Origin: Epithemia pelagica
Lineage: Eukaryota > Protista > Bacillariophyta
Direction: 5' to 3'
DNA: 64,000 bases
Assembly: GCA_946965045.2 (NCBI GenBank)
Contig: OX337229.1
Location: forward strand, 1,550,001 to 1,614,000
Shown: in pieces, positions 17,590 to 32,692 of the stretch
Layout: each line of letters starts with the position of its first letter
Position numbering within the stretch: the stretch's first letter is position 1
Notes under the pieces: model-generated
What the model was told of the DNA's origin: nothing
What the model saw: the letters and a program-made list of their open reading frames with translations, nothing else
The model's database searches: none
Translations under genes and position numbers: made by a program

Positions 17590-18765
17590 CTAGTTCTTTT
17601 TCCCTCGTACCACCATGGCTACAGCAACCACAATTCCTGCACTCAGAGCACCAACCAAATACATGGCATTGTCGCGAAAGGGATTTCGATCTCGGTTCCC
17701 CGATTTAATGTGGACCTTCCCATCCTTTGAAACCGGTCGATGGAGTTTGTAAATTTTGTGACAGTGCTGACCCGCCAATGTCTTGTTGAAATCGTGCACG
17801 AGCTGCATAAATTCTGCAGGACTGGCCTCTTCTCGGATACTCCGAATGGAGGCTTGAGCCGGACAAATCATGATGCTTGCCAAGGCGGCAAAGGTCAAAT
17901 CGGCCGCCGTGAATCCATACTTTGTTTCGCGTGTATCAAAAATGTATTCTCCTCCATTGCGTTGCAATCGTTCGGAAATCTCGTGGAGTACTAATTTCAC
18001 TTCCTCCACGGATTTTCGGTTCACCTCGGCATTCCATTTGAGAGTAGATTTCAATCCCTTGTCAATTCCCTTATCCAGCATTTTTTCAAAGAGTGTAGAC
18101 TCCACTTTGGATGAGCTGTGACAGGTGAATCGACAATATTCTTTGTAGTATTTTTTGTCCTCGTCGAGAAAGTAGTAGTAACAAATGGCACGGATCGTGG
18201 CTCCCAACCGCTCCGCCAAATCCACTTCAAACTCTTTGACTTGCTGTTCAATTTCAGAAGGATAGAGAGAGGGGCACATTTCCTGCAGAATTTTGTCCGA
18301 TTGTGCAATGGTGCGTCCACTGGGGAAGACGAGCAGCGGCGTCAACGAGGTTGTGCCATCCGTCAAGGGCAAGGTTTGATAGGCATGAAAGACTGGAGGA
18401 TGGGCATCTTCCGTGTAATAGTAGGGACTGTTTGGATATTGTTCCAACAAATCCAAACCCCAGCGAGCTTTTTCACAAAAGTGACTTATTCCAATCGTCA
18501 CCAAACGCAAATGCTTCGTCTTGGATGGCGACGGTGGCTCCCTGGAATCGTCGACTCGGGAAAACAGTTCCACCAGAATGCGTGCCACGCCCAAGGGATG
18601 AAATCCACGAATTCTGTCCAGCGTCATGGGTTTCGTATCGCATGGTGGCAAATCCTTACGCTGTGTGAAAGAAGCCGTGGTGGGCATGGTGGTCGTCGAA
18701 GATGCCATGATCCATGATATCCTCGTCGTCTTGTCTCGCTGGCCGAAGAAGGGTTCTTGGGCCAT
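17590..18765 (-). CDS. Glutathione S-transferase-like protein with C-terminal membrane anchor
   Basis: SHFCEKARWGLD, LTP, QSDKIL, FTAADLTFAAL; hydrophobic C-terminus followed by RGKKN. Confidence 0.78.
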   Translation of the reverse strand: MAQEPFFGQRDKTTRISWIMASSTTTMPTTASFTQRKDLPPCDTKPMTLDRIRGFHPLGVARILVELFSRVDDSREPPSPSKTKHLRLVTIGISHFCEKARWGLDLLEQYPNSPYYYTEDAHPPVFHAYQTLPLTDGTTSLTPLLVFPSGRTIAQSDKILQEMCPSLYPSEIEQQVKEFEVDLAERLGATIRAICYYYFLDEDKKYYKEYCRFTCHSSSKVESTLFEKMLDKGIDKGLKSTLKWNAEVNRKSVEEVKLVLHEISERLQRNGGEYIFDTRETKYGFTAADLTFAALASIMICPAQASIRSIREEASPAEFMQLVHDFNKTLAGQHCHKIYKLHRPVSKDGKVHIKSGNRDRNPFRDNAMYLVGALSAGIVVAVAMVVRGKKN

Positions 18766-19137
18766 GTCGATGGGGGTTCATGGATCTTTGTGTCTCGTCT
18801 TGCGAATGAAAGATGCGGTCGCGTATTGTGTCGCGTATTGTGTGCGTCACGGTGATGACGTGGGTAAAAGCTCTAGTGGTCGTATCCATTTATTTCAAAA
18901 AAGAAATTTCACGACACACAGTTCTTACTTCTGGAGTGTAACATTTTGAATGACACATGGCTTCCTCCATCCATTCGCCATCGATCGTCTCGGTGATGGT
19001 GATGGCCACAAGGGTCGACAGTAGACACTATACACCTACCTCCCTGCATTCGTTCCATTCATTATTGTGAGTGTGTTGTACGGCAGAGAGCGACACCTAG
19101 CAGCAGACGACGACGATAGTTGCGCGAGTCAAGCATC

Positions 19138-20696
19138 ATGGGATCGGGCCAATCCAAACAGCCATCCGAATCGGTATCGTCGACAGTGTCGAAATCCAGT
19201 GATGGACAGCCCCCAGTGACAGTGCCTGCCAAAGACAATCAAGGCCCCGCTAATACCGACTCGGTGCCTGCGGAACAAAACTCGGAGAGCAAATGTCCGA
19301 TGCATCGCTCCGACGGTTCCTATAGCTTTGACTGGGCAGCCTTGTTGAGACCATCCTTTCCGCATGGACCGAATGGGAAGAAACCCTTGAGCGAAGAAGA
19401 GGCCAAGGCCAAGATTGCTCGTCGAGCTACGGCACTCGATGCTGGCTTTGCCTCACCAGGTGGATTGTGTCCGGTGCAACATCGAGAGTACAATGTCTAC
19501 TCGCAACCCATTGATCCTTCCAACAATATGCCGCAAAATCCCAATCAATTGCCGGCACCCGAACAAACGGCCAACCTCTCGACGGATCGAGTGAAAAGCA
19601 ACATTCCCAAGGTAGGTACATGTCTGAAAAATCATCTTTTCCATCTTCAATTGCTCAAGATTCTGGTTTAAATTTGACTTGGCCTGATACTTCTTTCGCG
19701 CACACGGTCCAACTATGTGGATTGATGCAGGGAGGTGCAGCCGATGGAACCACGTGGACGTACCCCTCGGCTCAAATGTTTTACAATGCACTGGCTAGAA
19801 AAGGCAAATTGGGTGATACACGAGAAGAAGAAATCGACAGTGTCGTCGCCTTACACAACAATATGAATGAAAAGACATGGAAAACAGTACTGGAATGGGA
19901 AGCGGCAACAGCGTCGTCACCTTTGGATCCGACCAATGAAGAAAAAATGGAAGCACCGAAACTGCTCAAATTTACCGGACGACCCAAGGATTTGAGTCCC
20001 AAAGCGTGGATGAAACACAAACTGTTAGGTCACCCGTTGCCATTTGATCGCCATGATTGGACCATTCTACGACCCAACGGCACCACCGTGCGATACGTCA
20101 TTGACTATTACTATGACGAAACACGAGCCAGAGAAGACGACAAAAGCGGCATGCCAGACATGAACGATTCCTTGGCCACACCTTCTCTTTTGGTGGATGT
20201 GAGACCAGCTTTGGACGGGCCGTCGCAACTTTTTAACCGCACGGTGCGAATGCCCTACATGCAATGGTCCGGCGTCACGTCGTACCAGTACATGCCATTA
20301 TGGCCCACAGATGAAATGCGGAACCAGGTAAAAGAATCGGTAGACGTATGGAAAACGATTCAAGCAAAGGCCAATGGAGAGAGCACAGACGAACCCACCA
20401 TCAAACCACTCAGCGAGAAAGAGGCACAAGCGCTGAGGACCGACATGACCAAAGCAATTGGAGCATGTCGAGCCCTACAAAGAAAGGTGGATCAATGTCA
20501 GTCCGACAACGAGTGCGCCAAAGCCAGTTTAGATCTCACAATAGGCATGGGCAAAATCCTTTGTCCTTTGCAGCATTCACATTTCGGCACGGCATTGTCC
20601 AATACAGATGAGACCAAAATCGAACATACCCTGGAACGATTGGGTGAATGTGTGGTGTTGAGATCAACGCAATATGACGCTCTGCAATCCAAGTGA
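19138..20696 (+). CDS. HCCS: Holocytochrome c synthase (cytochrome c heme lyase), 2 exons
   Basis: Exons 19138-19611 and 19731-20696. CPM/CPV heme-regulatory motifs, WTYPSAQMFYNAL.RKG, HNNMNEKTW, F.GRP.DLSPKA, PFDRHDW, VRYVIDYY. Confidence 0.94.
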
Positions 20697-20954
20697 AGGT
20701 GGTAGTACTTTTTCTCTAGACAACGAGGCCTTAAAGATATACTTTTTTCTTGACGTTTGTTTCCGTTTTGCTGTGGTTGCAAATGACAACCTCATGCGTA
20801 TGAAGTGTGACTGCTAGTGTTAGCACTTGTGTGTGTCCACCACATTTGGCGCACACGAGATTATTAGCATAATGGCATTGGATCCAACCACAAAGCAGGT
20901 ACCACCAATGGGATATCCCTTTCAACATCAGCTGACAGATACGATAAGTTGTTT

Positions 20955-21846
20955 CTAGTCCAAATACAGAACTGTCACCAGCATGTCCAACTTTTTTGCT
21001 TCTTTTGAAGCTTCAATGACCGTAGTGCTTTCATGAAAGGCAAAGCTGATCAACTGGTCCGTTTGACTGAGTAAGTAGCTGTTGCAAATTCGACTGGCAA
21101 TGTCTAACGACAATTCATCATTCTGTGGCATTGCCACCACATCGTCCACCCGTTCCAGCAATTCTTGTGATTCTTTGGGTTGTTTGCCCATACTTTGAGG
21201 TAGAACGACGGTCAATAAGTCTGGACGTTCCGCTCTCAACGCTCCCCGAATTGTGGCCGCGTGAGTTCCACCGGCACCCGACGTGTACACATGGTTCCCC
21301 GACAACACCAGTGCATATGCTCTGCATGGATCATAGATAGGAAATGAAAAAATGTGTACAGAGTCAGACAGGATCTTCCGTCACAGATCATTGATCTATT
21401 GTGAAATTTTCATGAGCATACACTTACAAAAGTTCGATAATTTGTTGATGCAAGTAGGAGCAATGTCTTGTGCCCAAAATGCAATACTTTTGGGGACCCT
21501 GCTGTTGAATCGCCGCAAGCTCTTTCAGGATGGAAGTTACACTGCGCTCTTTTTCTTGTACTCTTATTTGTGGGTCTCCCACCTTGACACCTTCTCCAAT
21601 CCTCTCGGAAGGATCGTAACCACCCAAATCACGATCAGGGCGTGGCTTGTTTTCCCTGTCTTTTGGAGACAAAGGCTCTTCGTCATCTTGGTTGCTCTTC
21701 GGAACCATTGCGATCGATAGAAGGCAGTCAAACTGCTCGGTTTGACGAGTGGGTAGTCGGTTCATGGTATGCTTGATCGGAACAGTGAAACTCGACATAC
21801 CACCGATTAGAAGAAGAAAGGACACAAGATGAAGGCATTGTCCCAT
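20955..21846 (-). CDS. DprA/Smf(LOG)-fold protein of the cyanobacterial/plastid type, 2 exons
   Basis: Exons 21846-21428 and 21321-20955 join in frame (IIELL|AYALVLSGNHVYTSGAGGTHAATIRGALRA). ILGTRH motif; signal peptide followed by F (MSS-FTVP). Confidence 0.72.
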
Positions 21847-22121
21847 CCTTGTTGAGGATTGTCTGCTTCGTTTGAGTTGCGCCATTGTTGGACGTTGTGG
21901 ATTCTGAGTTCGCCCCATGCCTTTCTGATCGGCAGACAGCTCGGTGGACTGTTGGATTGTTCTATTGGAATGTGAGTGTTCTTCGTTCGGCTTTGCAGAT
22001 GGTGAAGGATCCTTGCGGATGTGGAAGAGTGGAACTGCAACTGGAGGAGTGGAAGGGAGTCGCGTGTCATGGACTTTGGTCGCACGTTTTCGTTCAAAGA
22101 GAATCATCCAACAGATGCACC

Positions 22122-22682
22122 ATGACAATGGCGTCTTCCGATTCGCAAACGTTGTTGGATGAACAAATTCAACTGCCTTTATTGAAATATGGATATCGAA
22201 CAGTACCATTGGAATGGAACGAAGTTGTCCACATCATCAATGTGGAAGGAGATCTTGATAAACTCACACGAAGCGAGAAACAACAACGTGAATACATGAT
22301 CTACACACGCAGAATCAAGGAAGAATGGCGTTCCGTCATGGATTATGTTTTTTATACAAAATTTGGACTGGAAAAAATGATTGATGAACGGGATAATCGG
22401 TGGTATGTGTATCCACCATTATCAGAAATCACTGGAGTGCACACTCGCATTGTAAGGAATGATTTTCCGTACTGTTTCCAAAGAAACATTGAGCACTGGG
22501 TTCTCTGGAAGATTGGTGAGGATTGCTCGGAGTCGGATATCACAGCGGCAAAGGATTCAATAAGAAAAGACCTTGGAAACGTACGAGATTTCATTCATTG
22601 GATAAACCCGCCCCATCTCAAGAGTCTCCCTGAAGTTGACCACGCTCACATTTTAGTCCTTCGTGACGATGCCAGTTTCTGA
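22122..22682 (+). CDS. GIG1/DUF3605 family protein (HIT-like)
   Basis: NDFPY....IEHWVLW and WINPPHLKSLPEVDHAHIL motifs; probable start MTMASS at 22122. Confidence 0.82.
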   Translation: MTMASSDSQTLLDEQIQLPLLKYGYRTVPLEWNEVVHIINVEGDLDKLTRSEKQQREYMIYTRRIKEEWRSVMDYVFYTKFGLEKMIDERDNRWYVYPPLSEITGVHTRIVRNDFPYCFQRNIEHWVLWKIGEDCSESDITAAKDSIRKDLGNVRDFIHWINPPHLKSLPEVDHAHILVLRDDASF

Positions 22683-22876
22683 AAAAGTCGAAAGGCTCTA
22701 TGGACTTGAGCATGTCTGCCATCATGGTGGTCTCAAGTAGAGAACCGTGGGACGGGAACTTCTCGCCTGGCTTTCGCTCAATGATCACAGTTTTGGCTTG
22801 CAAGTAGCAGAGAAAGGTTGATGGGTCGAAGTACCATGCTTGTTCTTTCGTACCACTTTTTTTAACACTGGTTTCA

Positions 22877-25332
22877 TCATATGATCTGCTGTTCCCATAC
22901 AACATGTGAAACAGAGCAAGCCTGCGACACTTGTACAAAAAGGTGGTTTCGAACCCTGACCGTAACTTCCAAACCGACTCGGGTGTCGGGTTTCTTTTCC
23001 GCATCGTGTGGGAACACAATGTTTCTTCGTCTGACAGATGACTCATTGTCTTGTTCGGCAATCTTCGCCGCGTTGGTCAGGATCGCATTGGGAGGGACGG
23101 CAATATGGACACACATTTTTCGGCCCAAGTATAGAGTTCCTGCTGCAGCAATTTCCTGGGTGCTATTCACGACATCGACGCCGCCAACTTCAAACCCCAA
23201 GTCACGACCCATTTCACACTTGTCGGCATCGCGTTTCTCGTTCACTTTGCAAATGACAACGGAATGGAACCAACCAATAGCTTTGTCTCCTACTCTTGGA
23301 TACGTTTCGGATGTCTTGGAGGAACTTGATTCATATGGGAGAAACAATCGGAGCTTCCCCGACATGACAATCCCATAGAAGGCCTTTTTGCTGTCGACAA
23401 AGCCGAGACCACCATATAAGCCCAACGTTCGTTTGGCAGCCTTTTCTTTTTCGGACAGGTCCATGACCCACCCACGGTTGTAGTACATTTTTGATTTCGG
23501 CAGCATGATATCCATATCTTGTGCAACTGCACCTGAAATGGCATTTTCCACCAAGTCGCCTCTCCCCATAATTGGTTCAAAGGTTGTTCTGCAGTGAGTA
23601 GGACGCATACGCCATCTGTGAGTGCGATTGTCCATTTCTTCTCCAAACAAGATGGATGTCCAGGGAGGCAGATCTGACACATTTAAGTTGGCGTATGGTT
23701 TCGGCAAGAGTGAAACGTCCAACTTTTGCTGTGATCGGTCGTCGTCACAATCAAGGCCGATCCCTGGGTCGGTCAAAGAGGCTGCCACCAATTCTAGAGC
23801 TGCAAGAAAATGCATTGCTAATATCCATCCAATGAATTCATGTTCTTTCATTGCTGGATGATGAAGAGCTTGGCCTGGTGCTCCATGGGGTGCTCCAAAC
23901 TTAATCACAGACAACAAGGATGAATGGCGAAGAGGCAGAATACACGTGATGATGAGTCTTTTATATGCAAACATGATTTCATGCATATCAGGTCGCACCA
24001 ACTTACTTTTCTCCAATCACGAAAGCCCAAGGGCAGGTCACGATCTTCGCGAGAAAGAAAGGGTTCCGTCGCTGGTTCTGTGTGAAGGACCACCGAATCT
24101 TTGAGGTCTCTTGTTTGTAAATAATACTTGAGCAAGTCACGTCTCTGAGTAGCCATATGGGTGTCTTTGACAATGAGTTTGGGACGTCGTGGTAGTTGGA
24201 GCGCGTGTCGGATATAGGCTTCCAGTCCAAAGGGATCACCACCGGCTTCGTTCATGGCAAAGTCCCAGGAAATCACATCGGTTTCCTCTCCCCAAAAGTT
24301 TTTCATACACCAACCATAGGGAAAGGATGGACATCCACCAACGGCAGCATTTGTCACATTCAAACGAACACCGAGCAACTCAAAGGCATCATGAAGTTTT
24401 CGTTCCAAGACAAACGGAAACGATTGATGAAAGTAGTTGCCACGTCCTACGGTCACAGAGTAGCCTCCAAAGGTGAAACGAAAGGTTCGATTTGCGTTTC
24501 TTGCCGAGTAGATTCGACAGGCTGTATGTTTCAGATCTGAAGGGAAGTTGGATCCTGGTGCCGAATCGTCCTTTGTATCGTGGTGATCCCATCCAAAGGT
24601 GGAGAGACCACGGTCAAGTATGGTTCGTGCAGCATTTTCTCCACCATACAGCTCCGCAAAGTCTCTTCTTAGATTCGATGCCGTCTTCCAAAACCGTTTC
24701 AGTTCACCACTCTCATCCCTGTGCTTGTTCTTCTGGTTTTGTGCTGGGGTGTTTTTGGCAAAAAGCTTTGCCAGAGCAAACGCATCGTAATTGGCATGTT
24801 GTGATAAGTTGAACAAGGGCAGTGGAGGGGGTACGTATTCGGTTGCAATTTGAACAGGAGTATCCAAATCTTCCTGATGAAGAAGTGGATCCTTCGCTTG
24901 AGTCTCGCTGCTCCCGTGTTTTGCTACTGCTGCAGCCGCTTCTTCTTCCTCCTTTAGGTCTTTGGCAAGGCCGGCCATGTAGTCATCGTCGTAGTCTTCT
25001 TGGGCTGGTTGTGGTGGTGGAGCTGGCACAATGTACCGATAAACCCTCCATGAAGCCAAGAAAAGGAGGGACAATACAGTTCCTGTTTGCAGGAACAAGA
25101 CATAAAAGGGTGGATCATTGTCGGGTGTTGTTGTTCGTTGATGTTTGCGCTTCTTTCGTCGTTTGACCGGTGTGGTGGTTGGATTCTTCTTCCATATCTC
25201 GGAAGAAAACAAGTCGCCATCCTCAACCGTCTTGGTAGTCTTGACCGGTCGCCGGCGTCGAGACAAGGCTTCTCCCTCCAACATTCGACAAACGATGAGA
25301 GAAGCAACGACCAAACTCAATGACGACCGCAA
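22877..25332 (-). CDS. Membrane-anchored SGNH-hydrolase-like protein, 2 exons (~782 aa)
   Basis: Exons 25332-24007 and 23899-22877 join in frame (DWRK|FGAPHGAPG). Blocks FGGYSVTVG, NAAVGG, WDFAMNE; hydrophobic segments near the N-terminus. Confidence 0.65.
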
Positions 25333-25525
25333 TGAGAAATGAATGAGATGGTCATTGAGCAGAGAGGCAGGGAAAGTAAGGACTCAAAAGCGACTTTAAA
25401 GCGACCAAAGGACAAATTTTTCGTGGACCACAGAGAGGCAGATGGCACGATGTCGGTTGGATCTATTGTTCGACGACGATTCTGTCACTTCGTTGCAAGA
25501 TCTGCCTCGCCCTTTTGGCTGCACA

Positions 25526-27148
25526 ATGAACAAATGCATGATGCTGGTAGCGTTCCTGGCATCGAAACATGCCCTGTCCAGAAATGCCGCGGCAGCTTGG
25601 ATGGCGACCGCTGCCGGAAAGAGACAACGATCGTTCCATCGCCTCCTGCCCCTTTGTCAAAGTAGTACCCACATGGATGACCAGGGACGACAAATTCGAA
25701 GACGATCCAACGATGACGACAATGAGTGGGATAAAGACTATATGGACAACCGAGCTTCGGACGATGACTGGAATGTAGCTCCTTCTCGAACCAATTTTCA
25801 AGACTATTCCACTTCGCGTCGTCGTTTCGACAATGATCGTGATCAAGACGGTTGGGACGATTTCGATCCATTTCGCAACAATAACAACGACGACGATAGG
25901 AGGGACAACAATCGCAATTTCAACAACCGTGGTTACAATCGATCGCCAGGTTCCATTGGTGGTCGCCGCTCGCGTCAGAGAAGTGACTCCGGAGACACCA
26001 GACGGTTCAACAACCATAGGAAGAATGGACCTGCTCGTTCGAGAAACAGTAATAATTTCTCTCGTCAATACGACAACCGTTACTCCAGTCCACCAGCCAA
26101 AAACGAATCACCTGACCGGAAGATTAACATGAGAGCTCTGGAAGGAGCAGGCTTTGTACATTTGTATGGATTGGCGTCCACTCTCAACGCTCTCGAAGCC
26201 AATCGCCGCGATTTCAGGCGGCCAGAAGATGAAATTGACCTGGATTCATTGGAAGGAAATGATCTTCGTTACGAACTCAAACAACGAGAACGGAAGCCCG
26301 AAGCACAATTCTCTCCTTGGCTGTTTTTGCAATCCAGCACGGGCGAAAAGAGTACTCGATCCTATAGCAAATCCATGCAGGCTGATCGTGTCCAGTATCT
26401 GGCCGAGAAACGTGGTATTCCAATTGCCCATGTCGATAAGGGTGTCCTGAACTCCCTATCCAACAATCGTCCTCATCAGGGATACGTCCTTCGATGTGGG
26501 AAACTGGACTTTGACCTACTTCCTCGTCTTCCCAATCCAAATGGGGAGGATGAGGATGAGGACGAGGAAGCGGGAGACAACTTCAGTGGTGAGGAATTCT
26601 CTCTTCATCCACCCAAATTATGGTTGGCCCTTGACGAGGTTGTCGACCCACAAAATTTGGGAGCCTTACTCAGATCGGTCCATTTTCTGGGTGGTGATGG
26701 GAGCAGTGAAACATCACCTGCCGTTCGTGTGCTGGTTTGTGCCAAAAACTCCGCACCACCCTCACCTGTGGTGAGCGCGAGTTCTGCAGGAGCCTTGGAG
26801 ATCATGAAGATATACAGTACTTACAATTTGCATAAAACCTTGGCTACCGCCGAAATGGATGGATACCGAGTGATTGGGGCCTCCTCCAGCGTACCCAAAA
26901 ATCTGGACGATGTTCCCATTTACAATCTACAGGACTTGCCTCCATTGGACCCCAACCAGCCCACTGTTTTGGTTTTGGGATCCGAAGGACATGGAATACG
27001 CAACCTGGTAGCCACGTCATGTACCGAATTTGTTCGAATTCCTGGCGGAAGTGAGCACATGAACCAGGATGCAGATGTGGGGGGAGTGGATTCTCTCAAT
27101 GTCAGTGTCACAGGAGGGATCCTCCTTTGGCATTTGTTGCGTGGCTAA
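25526..27148 (+). CDS. SpoU/TrmH-family rRNA 2'-O-methyltransferase (MRM1/RlmB-like)
   Basis: HQGYVL, LALDEVVDPQNLGALLRS, LVLGSEGHGIR, VDSLNVSV..GILL; long N/D/R-rich N-terminal extension; start uncertain (25442-25541). Confidence 0.9.
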   Translation: MNKCMMLVAFLASKHALSRNAAAAWMATAAGKRQRSFHRLLPLCQSSTHMDDQGRQIRRRSNDDDNEWDKDYMDNRASDDDWNVAPSRTNFQDYSTSRRRFDNDRDQDGWDDFDPFRNNNNDDDRRDNNRNFNNRGYNRSPGSIGGRRSRQRSDSGDTRRFNNHRKNGPARSRNSNNFSRQYDNRYSSPPAKNESPDRKINMRALEGAGFVHLYGLASTLNALEANRRDFRRPEDEIDLDSLEGNDLRYELKQRERKPEAQFSPWLFLQSSTGEKSTRSYSKSMQADRVQYLAEKRGIPIAHVDKGVLNSLSNNRPHQGYVLRCGKLDFDLLPRLPNPNGEDEDEDEEAGDNFSGEEFSLHPPKLWLALDEVVDPQNLGALLRSVHFLGGDGSSETSPAVRVLVCAKNSAPPSPVVSASSAGALEIMKIYSTYNLHKTLATAEMDGYRVIGASSSVPKNLDDVPIYNLQDLPPLDPNQPTVLVLGSEGHGIRNLVATSCTEFVRIPGGSEHMNQDADVGGVDSLNVSVTGGILLWHLLRG

Positions 27149-27444
27149 AGTGATGACTGTCGCTTCGATGGATAATTGCGATCCAACCAAACAAATACTT
27201 TTCTAAACCGATGTAGCTCGTTATACCTGGTCGTACTATGTAGGTGATTCCATTTCACATCAGCTGGTCACCATGTTGAACTTTCTTCGGAGAATCAACT
27301 AGAGTATCATTGTCGTTGATCTTCTTCGCTTGATCTCTTCTACCTTACGGAGGAGACTCAAACCAACAACAAATATCATCTATCATCTCTAACTCTAATC
27401 TCTCCCATTTCTCCCATCTACAAAAAATAATAATACGAGTGTAG

Positions 27445-28036
27445 AGTAGCCAATACAAAATACAATGCGAGTATACCCATGCCGCGTGGGTTAAGGCAGA
27501 GATTCAAAAACTTGACAAGCAAATCCGGATTGCTCCAGAGCAAAATTCGCAGCAAGGGCTTTCAGATATGTCGACCTCCACCGCTACGATTGTCGGCTCT
27601 TCTCTGTTGATTGCACTGGTGTCGGTTGTGGCTTTCATTCCGTCTTAGAAAACGGTAGTTTTGCCGATTCACAATCTCGACCGTGAGCTCGAAGATATGG
27701 CGTGCGGTCGGGATCTCAGTTACCGAGTGGATGACGCCAGTGAAGTCGAGGTCGGAACCACAGCTAAAAGTGTGAATGGCTTATTGAGTACTTTCCAATC
27801 AAGTCGGGGAAGCGATTCATGCGATGGGCGGCGTGGCCAAATCCATGGATGCGGGGGCAGCGGAGTCACAGACGTCTGTGGACCATATGCATCGAGAAAT
27901 TGAGCAACATGGTGTCAGCATGGAAGCCCTGGAGAACCAAATTCGAAGTAGTTCTGATGTGGCAGAAAAAGCCTCAACTACCGGCCAGAAGGGTGCTGAA
28001 GATGTTGTTGAAGTTGAGGCCACTTCTAGTCCTTAA
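27445..28036 (+). pseudogene. Decayed bacterial methyl-accepting chemotaxis protein fragment (TM2-HAMP-start of signalling helix)
   Basis: One frame reads TIVGSSLLIALVSVVAFIPS*KTVVLPIHNLDRELEDMACGRDLSYRVDDASEVEVGTTAKSVNGLLSTFQS (stop at 27646). After a frameshift near 27800 it continues VGEAIHAMGGVAKSMDAGAAESQTSVDHMHREIEQ. Confidence 0.68.
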
Positions 28037-28340
28037 TCGACGTTGTCATCATGGCATGATATAGCTCTTTGGCTTGTTTTGCTCGATGAATGTCTCTTGG
28101 CGTGAATTGTTCCATGTTTTCCTTGACGGTAGTGACAAACGTTATGCCGTTGTCGTTCGGATCGTAACACCACAGTCCTCCACTGATCGGTTTGAACGTC
28201 CTGGTGTCCTTCCCATCTTCAATGTAAAAGCTGCCATAATGTTTGGAAATTTTTGCTGGACTCGATATGGTTGTACCATACTGCTTACTGCTTCGTAGTT
28301 CGGTAAATCGCCGATTTTGGTACATTTCATAATTCCGCAA
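28026..28340 (-). mobile_element. Relic of a different Ty1/Copia lineage (region between protease and integrase)
   Basis: GGLWCYD...FVTTVKENMEQFTPRDIHRAKQAKELYHAM resembles the conserved TV.EN...FT.R....A..AR.LY pre-integrase segment of diatom Copia polyproteins; no LTR seen. Confidence 0.62.
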
Positions 28341-28347
28341 GATTCGT

Positions 28348-29298
28348 TTACGTTATACTGTTGACCTTTGCCAGTGAACATCTCGCTAGCCGTCTCGCCT
28401 CATCTAGGACTTCGATTGGGTTGTCACCGTCTGCTCTTTCGGGCATGTTCGCCGGAATTATTCCATATTTGTCTCGAATCATCTCTTCGAGCTGGTCTCG
28501 AGTCCACTTGATTGGTATCCATTCGGGTTTTTTCTCTTCGTCTCCTGAGAGGCTCACGTCGCGACATATTCGCGCTAGAGGAGCAATTCTTCCCCATCCA
28601 TTCAACCGCACGAGACTGTTGGCTGTCGCCTTATCCCTAACCAGCACGAATAGAAGAACTTCCCTTGCTTTGACAATTGGATATAAATGTTTCATGAACC
28701 AAATATCCTCTTCTTTGATGTTATTAAAATCATCAAACACTATGACGGGTGTTCTTGGTAACAGAGTGAGGTCTAGCCCATCAATAGTGGGCATAACATC
28801 ATCCTCTTCGACCGTTCCGAAGCCGCTGCACATAGTTAGCAAGCCATCCATGAGACGATCCGCCCATGATTGAGTTTCACGGGTCATTGTCGCTTCTGAA
28901 ACGGCCGTCACCAGAAAAGTTTCCCAATCGGAACATTCTTCTTCGTACACTTTTTTGGGTATTCCCAATCTCTTTGCAACACCTTTCCAGTAAACTCCAC
29001 CGGTGTTGGCACCGGCACAGTTACAAAACATAATTCCCCCAGCTGAATTCTTGAGAACAAATTTAGCCGCCGTTGACTTTCCCAGTCCACGATCGGCTTG
29101 CACGACAACAACTCCGGTCTCGCCGCATGCCTCCACCATGTATTCGAGCAACTCAGATCGCAGGAAGCTGGGGGGAAAGCGCCCTTTCTCTGGATCGTTA
29201 AGAATAGCTCGCTTCTGGATAAAGCGATTCAGCAGCACATTCTTCTGCTTCTCGAATCGTCCGAGGCGTAAGTCTTCGAGGGTAATGTTTAGACTCAT
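28348..29298 (-). CDS. Orphan P-loop NTPase (AAA/STAND-like)
   Basis: Intact 316-aa ORF; Walker A VVVVQADRGLGKST, Walker B PVIVFDDF. Confidence 0.68.
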   Translation of the reverse strand: MSLNITLEDLRLGRFEKQKNVLLNRFIQKRAILNDPEKGRFPPSFLRSELLEYMVEACGETGVVVVQADRGLGKSTAAKFVLKNSAGGIMFCNCAGANTGGVYWKGVAKRLGIPKKVYEEECSDWETFLVTAVSEATMTRETQSWADRLMDGLLTMCSGFGTVEEDDVMPTIDGLDLTLLPRTPVIVFDDFNNIKEEDIWFMKHLYPIVKAREVLLFVLVRDKATANSLVRLNGWGRIAPLARICRDVSLSGDEEKKPEWIPIKWTRDQLEEMIRDKYGIIPANMPERADGDNPIEVLDEARRLARCSLAKVNSIT

Positions 29299-29679
29299 GC
29301 CTGTGTTGACTTTGGCAATTCAGAATTCAGTTGAGGTTGTTCGCGCTTTGTCATGTTGTGCATTGTTGCTGTTGTCCTGTGAAGAAATTCACAAGAGAAA
29401 ATGAGCTATGGGCTCAGTTTTTTCAGTAACCTTACTCCCACTCCCAGCAACTTCCGGTAACTACACTCAGCGCTGGAGATTCAGCGCTGGATATGCGTGA
29501 CCGCCTACCGCAGGAACGACCTCTACTTCTTACTCGTAGAGTTTGTGCGTTGGCGGAAAGCAAGAGAACGCGCAAGAGAATTCCTAACCGTTTCAAGGTT
29601 ATTACGTGGTGTTTAAAGGTTTTGAATACCGGTTCCTCTTCTCCAGCTATGAAAAATCTGACGTCGTCCAGTATGAGAT

Positions 29680-32600
29680 TCATTCGCCATTATTTCCCCT
29701 CCATATTGGTGAGGCGGCCAGACCAAATTTGGTCGCGTGTACTGGACACGTGCTAGGGAGAGCTTGCTCTCAAACAGGGTGGCTTTGCCAGCTCTCCAAC
29801 TGCCAGCAAGCGGCCCTGCGTGGATGACGGTTGGTTGTTTCATAATGCCGGACAAGCACACAACACACAATCCTTTTCTCTTGCCAAAGCACATCGCATA
29901 AATGGCATTCCAGGTGAGCTTAATCCATTGCGGATTGCCATGACAATTACATTGCACATGCTCACTCACACTTGTCGCTTTTGCTTGCTCTGCTCATTGG
30001 ACAAGAGTCTGCTCATCTGCTGTGTCTCTGGCTCAGCAGCTCATTACTTGCCATTGTTCATTTCTGTCGAAATGAGACCCATAACTTTCATTGCATTTAT
30101 CCATAGACTATAAACCTTCTTTTCTTTATTTCCTAGAAATAGAACTCAAGTGCTAGCCATCTATAGAGTTTAGTGCCTTCTGTTTTCGTGTTGTACATCT
30201 GTTTTCTGTTTGGAGCACGTCAATGACCCTCAGTTGCACCATGAACACATGACAGAGCAGCTCTTACAAGCTTGTACAGCTACAAATTGAATCATTCGCT
30301 GTTTGACTCTCGATCTAGGAGCTGATAATTAGAAAGTAGGGTGTGGGAGGAGCAAGATGGAGCCATCTACTTGAAGCAAAAACAACAAAATGTTTGGTTG
30401 TTGAGAAATGATTGAGAATGATGCTACAATATGAATAGTGAATCATCTATCCTACAGAAGACATGAAAGTAACAAACCAGCCAACAATCAAACAACAAAA
30501 GAATTACAAGAAGGGGAAAGGAAAAGATATTCCACTCGACCATAAGCAGCTTATACCTAGTCTACTCGTACAACATGAGACAAAACCAAAGGATCATGCA
30601 TAAACAAAAGGAAAGATTGCAGCAGTGATGAGTAAGAAGAAAGAAAAGGAGACAACAAGATTAGAAATAAGCAGCAGTAGTGAGAAGTTAGAAGTGATTC
30701 AGCCCAGCATGATCCGTCCATGGTTCTTACCTCACGTCATGGTCAAGCATTTGCCAGGGTTTTGGGTTTTGTGACAGACGAGAGCGAGAGGGTTGTCCAA
30801 ATTTACAAGCTGGTTTCACGAGGAACCTGTCTAGTCTATTACAGTAGAAATACTGTACTGACAATTTTGTACATAAACGATCATAGTAATTATCTATGCC
30901 CCTTTGCTTCTCGATACGGCAAATTTGGGGAAACGATGCCGTTCAAACCAGGAAGACCATGAGTCACCGGTCACCGCGCTTGGCGCTCACTTCGAGTGCG
31001 GACTCGACCGATACACAAACGGCCCCTGTTCCCCAAACTCCACCGACGCAGCTGATTCAGCCATCGTTGCGGAAACCGACGGCACCCAATCGAATGCATC
31101 CCACCACGTCAATTGGAGGCATGATCATGATGGGTCTTGCCCCCACCATCAAGTGACACCCGATATCCCCAAGACCATTGACAACTTGGACCTGGATCAA
31201 CCACATCGCAACAGTGATGATAATCACACTCTCATGAAGCAATTCCAAATACAAGACTAACGCCCGTGGTGGACAATGATCAAGTGGATGTCACCTTTGG
31301 ATGTGGAACCAACTTGTTGTCGACCGGATTCATATTGGAAAGCACGGATCCCGTGGTGCGAGACTTGTTTCTTCCCTTTCCCCGAACCAGCGATGGTACC
31401 AATCACCATACGAGCAGCAGCAGTGGTAGTAGTATTCTTCCCAACCAGCCAAACAATCCATACGACGAGGACGAGGATGTGAATAGTCGACGAACGCAGT
31501 CTCATCCACAATCCACAACTCCCATCCAAACCGTCCACTTCTCGAACGACCATTTCGGGACGAGTCAATACGACACCAGGAAGGACGACCAGTACACTGA
31601 CGCCGGTCCTGCAGCCCATCTCGTCCTCTGATTCCGCCATCAACTTTCGTACCGGCCTGTCTGGACACAGTGGGTTGGCAGTCTCCTCTTTGAAAAAAAG
31701 CAAGCCCCATTATTCTCCTCAAGCATCCAATCACCACCATGCAACCAACAGCAACAACCCACCGAGTATTACTCCTAGAGTTTGGGATTTTGATTGTGGT
31801 ATTTCATGTGCCTGGTTCGTAGCGGATAATCATTCCTACATATATATATATAACTGTTCATTTTGTATGATTCCTTCCAAACTGCCTGCGTATCCTTGAC
31901 AGACTGTTTCATCTCCAAACTCCAGGCCAGGCATGTGTGCGAATATCTACTAGGGATGTAAACGTAAGAGCCGATGTTACTAATCGTTCTAATAGGTATT
32001 AAGTGGACAACATTGTGAAGAAAAGATCCTGGTTTGGGAGATTGGTTGTCACACAGCCAAGTGCAGCGTTGACGACGGGACAGTCTCTCACACAGCCAGG
32101 GAGACAAACGAGGCAGCGGACGAGGCGAAAGTTTCTCACAAAGCCGGGGAGACAAACGAGGCAGCGGACGAGGCGACCACAGAACAGTGCACAACATGAA
32201 GCACTGCTATTTCTCGAGATACAGGCACCGCGTACGTGAAGTTTTTCGATAATCTGTTTATGTTATACCCATGCTATCGATCTGGCGCTTTACTTCAGGT
32301 ACCAGCGGCATGTGACGGCTATGGTGACCGGAAGCGGTGGCAGTTGTTTTTGTTTTCGTATTTCATAACGAAATTATGTGAGGAACGAGAAAACCTTAAC
32401 GCGTCCGCACCGCTAGATTACTATGAGATAATATGTACCAGAGAAAAGGGAGTAATTACCAATATTTGTACACAATTTTTGTACTGTAATAGACGAGGTA
32501 TATGGCGCGCGAAACCAGCTTGTATGAGCATTCGTCTCAAACAAGGACGCAAGCCGACCTTGATGTAACGGTGTTGGCAATTAGAGATACTTAGAGCTAC

Positions 32601-32692
32601 CTGAAGCAGTGGCGGGCGACATTGAAAACAGGATAGGGTTGGGGATTTGTCTGGCCGCCTCACCAATATGGAGGGGAAATAATGGCGAATGA
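29680..32692. repeat. 44-bp perfect inverted repeat pair about 2.9 kb apart
   Basis: TCATTCGCCATTATTTCCCCTCCATATTGGTGAGGCGGCCAGAC at 29680-29723 and its exact reverse complement at 32649-32692. Confidence 0.85.
32082..32177. repeat. 48-bp tandem duplication
   Basis: Two near-identical units containing GGGAGACAAACGAGGCAGCGGACGAGGCGA. Confidence 0.85.

Follow-up and report, generated by a model that had tools for sequence, protein, structure and literature searches.

A broken chemoreceptor gene fragment of likely bacterial origin in the genome of the diatom Epithemia pelagica

A stretch of 64,000 nucleotides from the diatom Epithemia pelagica (hereafter the window) carries, in the spacer between two host genes, a sequence of about 555 bp that is homologous to the middle of a bacterial chemoreceptor (MCP) gene. 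This piece has definite boundaries, bears several lesions and, on each of two allelic contigs, is linked to host genes. Based on these features, we consider it highly probable that an interior part of a bacterial MCP gene was inserted into the diatom spacer, where it would be nonfunctional and drifting neutrally. The insertion event itself is what we infer from them.

Extent and identity of the fragment

Homology to MCPs extends over window positions 27475 to 28030 of the forward strand and corresponds to an internal piece of a bacterial MCP gene. Three pieces of this sequence, searched separately and not as a joined translation, are collinear with an intact bacterial MCP of 533 amino acids (P0009) at 62-66% identity, with blastp E-values of 1e-11 to 1e-19 computed at whole-library size. 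Frame 1 is open from 27445 to 27645 and closes in a hydrophobic transmembrane helix, TIVGSSLLIALVSVVAFI. Its stretch 27475-27645 holds the end of the last sensor helix and the second transmembrane segment (TM2), and matches P0009 residues 144-200 (65% identity, E=1.6e-11). A premature and polymorphic TAG follows at 27646-27648, at the position of P0009 residue 201. Frame 1 then resumes at 27649 as KTVVLPIHNLDRELEDMACGRDLSYRV...EVGTTAKSVNGLLSTFQ, a HAMP remnant (27649-27800) of which positions 27649-27798 match P0009 residues 202-251 (66% identity, E=2.1e-12). The frameshift is caused by an 11-bp deletion at 27800/27801, which leaves P0009 residues 252-256 without counterpart, and frame 2 takes over from about 27803 with VGEAIHAMGGVAKSMDAGAAESQTSVDHMHREIEQHGVSMEALENQIRSSSDVAEKAS... 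This helix segment (27803-28033) runs up to a TAA at 28034-28036; its part 27803-28030 is the counterpart of the first cytoplasmic signalling (methylation) helix and matches P0009 residues 257-336 (62.5% identity, E=1.7e-19). The same frame-2 piece is 80% identical by blastp to residues 40-109 of a second protein, P0008.

The transmembrane segment, the TAG at 27646, the HAMP-like stretch, the frameshift and the helix segment listed by the original prediction are all present in the sequence. Its proposal of a bacterial MCP fragment, to be recovered by a protein-level search as frameshifted MCP matches, is borne out by the three collinear matches to P0009, which lie in two frames. The proposed span, 27445-28036, has to be trimmed: MCP homology occupies 27475-28030, whereas the first 30 bases are an open frame without detectable homology. 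At the DNA level, homology to the contigs that carry P0008 and P0009 (L006 and L005, respectively) begins at about 27475-27481, and a possible 5' extension to about 27440 is doubtful and non-significant. The signalling-helix piece breaks off abruptly before the conserved hairpin, and no homology is detectable 3' of about 28030. When the rest of the MCP genes was compared with both flanks, similarity was no higher than with shuffled sequence.

In terms of an MCP gene, the piece comprises about codons 144-336 of some 533, and the start, the first transmembrane segment (TM1), the sensor domain, the signalling hairpin, the second methylation helix and the gene end are absent. Only the last ~25 residues of the final helix of the periplasmic sensor are kept, the N-terminal TM1 and the ligand-binding domain being gone. 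As in MCPs, TM2 is directly followed by HAMP (the matches to P0009 residues 144-200 and 202-251). The reading frame, which an MCP would have uninterrupted, is broken by the TAG in the window haplotype and by the 11-bp deletion in both haplotypes. The MCP hairpin motif (EAARAGE..GRGFAVVA region) occurs in none of the frames of the 64-kb window, and the homology stops at P0009 residue ~336, about 30 residues into the PF00015 match. With a G+C content of 50%, against 47% for the window, the fragment does not stand out. The alignments are far beyond chance, and the piece is best described as homologous to an MCP but not itself a complete one.

Profile searches returned little for the window pieces. 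The Pfam HAMP model matched with E=0.0018 and 19 bits, under the 25-bit cut-off, Pfam MCPsignal gave no match on the window pieces, NCBIfam yielded only faint MCP and histidine-kinase HAMP matches on the three pieces, and no PDB sequence matched them. The frame-2 piece escapes MCPsignal because most of it precedes the PF00015 model: its counterpart in an Agrobacterium rubi MCP is residues 342-404, and there the Pfam MCPsignal match starts only at residue 408. Searches of plasmids with tblastn gave non-significant E-values (0.05-7), yet nearly all of the matches were annotated MCPs. A word-index protein search with the frame-2 piece recovered only its allelic copy, a 63-aa protein, 97% identical, on a 1.24-Mb contig.

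An exhaustive HMMER (phmmer) scan of the 82-aa frame-2 piece against 1.84 billion representative proteins gave only three matches: P0008 (75% identity, E=1.5e-22), P0009 (64%, E=8.5e-17) and P0010 (53%, E=3.7e-5). P0009 itself matches MCPsignal (E=1.2e-35) and, above the Pfam cut-off, HAMP (E=5e-8), and the clusters of proteins that look like it are bacterial MCPs, 100% of them from Bacteria. By blastn, the fragment is 72.5% identical to the uncultured bacterial contig L006 over 550 bp (window 27475-28013, E=2.6e-85) and 66% identical to L005.

The genes surrounding these relatives bear on the origin of the piece. P0009 is encoded on a 3.8-kb contig (L005) and has an AraC-type regulator and a NUDIX hydrolase as neighbours. 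P0008 is encoded on a 43.5-kb metagenome contig (L006) together with soxYZA, a flavocytochrome c, a molybdenum-cofactor (xanthine) dehydrogenase and an amidohydrolase; many genes of this contig are split, as in error-prone long-read assemblies, and its MCP gene is full length but for one frameshift. P0010 comes from a 704-bp contig without flanks (L007) that is MCP-like throughout. Nothing else in these three contigs resembles the window. A bacterial origin of the piece is supported by the bacterial neighbours of two of its only three relatives, the third being without flanks.

The fragment shares 73.8% nucleotide identity with L006, compared to 60-65% among the bacterial genes themselves. GTDB species representatives searched with P0009 contained only generic MCPs at 26-33% identity, and no relatives of the MCP piece were found in JGI metagenomes. 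The neighbour genes on L005 and L006, compared with plasmids, have their best matches at 34-45% in assorted Proteobacteria. The donor would be an unsampled bacterium and probably a proteobacterium.

The shortest of the three contigs deserves separate mention. L007 (positions 1-704) is a metagenome contig with 2x coverage, reported in 3 samples, that covers P0009 residues 122-356. It has two in-frame TAG stops and two frameshifts, none of them among the lesions of the window, and its DNA identity to the window is 60%. Since it has no lesions in common with the window and such a low DNA identity, L007 is a separate broken copy; it may be a bacterial pseudogene, a product of sequencing error or an insert that arose independently in a different host.

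Host locus, haplotypes and lesions

The fragment lies in a 1.2-kb spacer between two genes arranged tail to tail. A gene for a SpoU-type RNA 2'-O-methyltransferase (25442-27148, forward strand; Pfam SpoU_methylase E=7e-21, SpoU_sub_bind E=1.3e-5), with a long low-complexity N-terminus, ends 327 bp before the homology begins. A P-loop gene conserved in diatoms (28348-29298, reverse strand; AAA_22/AAA_16-like, with weak AAA Pfam matches) lies 318 bp downstream and encodes 316 amino acids. The latter protein has 34 homologues of about 310 aa, complete MMETSP transcripts among them; the named ones belong to Fragilariopsis kerguelensis and to a strain recorded as Entomoneis sp. CCMP467 (EukProt) and under an Amphiprora taxid. 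On these similarities, the flanking genes are eukaryotic and specifically diatom. Among the genomes sampled, the nearest homologues of the 316-aa protein reach 69% identity and stand in non-syntenic contexts, and no empty-site allele came to light. A spacer between convergent genes is where an insertion is least likely to be harmful. No terminal or target-site repeats were detected around the piece, where short matches occur at chance level only, and a transposon as its vehicle was rejected for want of framing repeats beyond that level.

A second copy of the locus is available. The window contig, ctg1306l (390,895 bp), and the 1.24-Mb contig ctg1343l (locus L004) belong to one ENA assembly, and the support that they lend each other is allelic and not that of an independent sample. 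Over 12.2 kb (window 17838-30051) they share 99.27% identity, and beyond that they diverge; this change from collinearity to divergence indicates that they represent two haplotypes. L004 contains the fragment in the same place and with the same boundaries, with seven differences within it. None of these is silent: one is the TAG, which is AAG in L004, and the six others change amino acids in five codons. The two alleles thus differ without constraint. The shared 12 kb show ~0.4% differences overall and reach their highest density, 1.26% (7 in 556 bp), in the fragment.

The spacer segments beside the fragment have 0 differences in 326 bp and 1 in 317 bp, and the fragment has about three times the density of the surrounding 12 kb. 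Its raised SNP density may be a chance effect of small numbers, or may reflect constrained neighbouring UTRs next to an unconstrained insert.

Comparison with the relatives specifies the lesions. In a five-way DNA alignment, all three bacterial sequences contain 11 extra bases at 27800/27801, coding SGMG(D/E), and this 11-bp deletion is common to both haplotigs. A further small deletion near 28012/28013 comes out as 12 bp, in frame, in the protein alignment, or as 1 bp in MAFFT. The codon at 27646 is AAG (Lys) both in the allelic L004 and in the intact L005 gene encoding P0009, and L006 differs there. Most likely, then, the TAG is the derived state and belongs to the window haplotype. The original prediction had taken both the stop and the frameshift as lesions of the insert; this applies to the frameshift in both haplotypes, whereas the stop is confined to that of the window. 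Splicing as an explanation of the stop and the frameshift was rejected, the alignment with the bacterial sequences showing a point change and an 11-bp gap and no intron-like insertion.

Origin, age and meaning of the insert

We propose that naked DNA from a bacterium in the surroundings of the alga reached the nucleus, and that a random internal MCP piece of ~555 bp was ligated into a break in the spacer, end-joining repair being the most likely route. The piece would have arrived as a fragment without start, sensor domain and hairpin, or would soon have become one. It would have decayed neutrally since then, with the 11-bp deletion fixed in both haplotypes, the second small deletion added and the stop present in one of them. 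MCPs signal via the hairpin to CheA and CheW, and eukaryotes are not known to possess CheA, CheW, CheR or CheB partners. With its hairpin missing, its frame disrupted and nothing but non-silent changes between its alleles, the fragment should be unable to work as a receptor.

The pattern of substitutions gives an indication of age. The dN/dS ratio between the fragment and L006 is ~0.09, compared to 0.12 between the two bacterial genes, and changes on the fragment branch (with L005 and L007 as outgroups) number 9 at first, 12 at second and 33 at third codon positions. Since this ratio is as low as between bacterial genes and third positions are favoured, nearly all of the divergence from L006 has accrued under coding constraint and only a small part after release from it. 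On our main reading the constraint acted in an unsampled bacterial lineage, and the third-position bias as such fits constraint in an unsampled bacterium or in a once-working diatom copy alike. A rough estimate based on the binomial error of the third-position share would put the neutral change accumulated at no more than about 4%. Measured against the coalescence of the haplotypes, the insertion has a minimum age given by the 1.3% difference between the alleles. The insertion would be young, because so little neutral decay is seen. These values, together with the alteration of codon meaning by all seven allelic differences, agree with the recent, decaying insertion that had originally been suggested.

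The same data can be read in other ways. A whole MCP gene might once have been acquired, kept and perhaps used by the diatom lineage, and later whittled down by deletions. The mostly silent divergence could equally have resulted from constraint inside the diatom, and small deletions (the one of 11 bp and that of 12 or 1 bp) are indeed visible. However, none of the other ~340 codons is left on either side of the piece, the host spacer measures only 1.2 kb, and there is no diatom relative among the 1.84 billion proteins. An MCP moreover needs CheA and CheW, which eukaryotes are not known to have, and we regard such a resident gene as improbable. Even less credit is given to a fragment that is in use, be it as a small membrane protein or as part of the 3' UTR of a neighbour. 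The L004 allele has an unbroken ORF of 111 codons, starting from an ATG just before TM2 and comprising TM2 and HAMP, and the 3' UTRs of the two convergent genes may extend into the piece. Yet this ORF is stopped in the window allele, one third of its 111 amino acids is out-of-frame sequence past the deletion, all seven allelic differences change the coding meaning at a density of 1.26% against ~0.4%, and hundreds of bases separate the piece from the ends of the host genes beside it. A use of this kind thus seems quite improbable.

Least probable of all, to the point of being nearly negligible, is an assembly artefact in which contaminant bacterial sequence was misjoined into a diatom contig. 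Diatom cultures are usually not bacteria-free and both contigs come from the same assembly, but in the two contigs the 555-bp piece agrees in location, in boundaries and in the 11-bp deletion, and still differs at seven internal positions. The piece is moreover broken by a frameshift, with a stop in addition in one copy, host sequence runs for tens of kilobases on both sides, and no neighbouring bacterial gene accompanies it. A contaminant or chimeric read is excluded, because two diverged alleles sit in one genomic context with diatom flanking genes. Live contamination had already been argued against in the original prediction, and the diatom genes on both sides and the SNPs inside the piece on two allelic contigs now sustain that view. 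The insertion of an internal, nonfunctional MCP piece from a bacterium remains our preferred reading.

Compared with the bacterial MCPs (P0009 and the L006 gene), the diatom piece has the same order of parts and is homologous over TM2, HAMP and the first signalling helix, with 62-80% amino-acid identity and 72.5-73.8% nucleotide identity to L006. Unlike them it is partial (codons ~144-336), frameshifted, stopped in one allele and located in a eukaryotic chromosome. Non-functional bacterial DNA in eukaryotic nuclear genomes is well known from the Wolbachia-derived inserts of insects. In termite genomes, horizontally derived pseudogenes are reported to outnumber genes (bioRxiv 10.1101/2025.03.16.643567). 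The MCP piece resembles such inserts as a promoterless, truncated and decaying bacterial piece flanked by host genes and evolving without constraint. It would differ from them in its free-living diatom host, in being a very short piece of a single gene and in its donor, a motile bacterium of free-living type instead of a germ-line endosymbiont.

A few per cent of diatom genes are widely reported as bacterium-derived, in the Phaeodactylum genome paper and in later surveys. The MCP piece shares with them the direction of transfer and the host group. Those functional genes, however, are intact, expressed, often intron-bearing and kept by selection, whereas the MCP piece would be unselected raw material. 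Working bacterial genes in diatoms are the survivors of selection; a broken and useless piece shows the unfiltered input. Searches of the literature did not turn up an earlier MCP fragment from a diatom, and we consider this one a clean, well-bounded, young and dead bacterial insert. The presence of useless MCP DNA would imply that bacterial DNA of no value reaches the nuclear genome and is fixed in both chromosome copies. Young, with a segregating stop and with rare uncultured relatives, the piece could serve as a marker for dating insertions and for asking which surrounding bacteria donate DNA. On its own, the piece modestly confirms a known phenomenon and brings no new principle. That this diatom takes up and integrates random bacterial DNA unusually often is conceivable, although we lean somewhat against it. 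If this were true, the MCP piece would be one datable neutral marker among many, and the raw influx of bacterial DNA before selection would become measurable.

Open frames and repeats near the insert

A 104-codon open frame on the reverse strand (28026-28340) lies directly against the 3' end of the fragment. Pfam gave no match for it, and a word search no relatives. By language-model features it is like unnamed clusters, one of them from a diatom, and more weakly (0.87) like the GAG-pre-integrase/Pol_BBD of Copia elements. In the other haplotig it is frameshifted by a 1-bp gap at 28240. This frame may be a decayed scrap of a retroelement or a product of chance.

The haplotypes also differ 2 kb beyond the fragment, by a structural difference of the size of a transposon, where they cease to be collinear (window 30051). 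About 1 kb past this point, L004 carries a gene for a 2304-aa Copia polyprotein (L004 12224-20192; zf-CCHC, gag_pre-integrs and RVT_2 domains), a transposon difference specific to one haplotype. In the window, two copies of a 47-nt inverted repeat, 98% identical and ~3 kb apart (29680-29726 and 32646-32692), lie around the end of collinearity. A DNA transposon, present in one haplotype or rearranged, may have these repeats as its ends.
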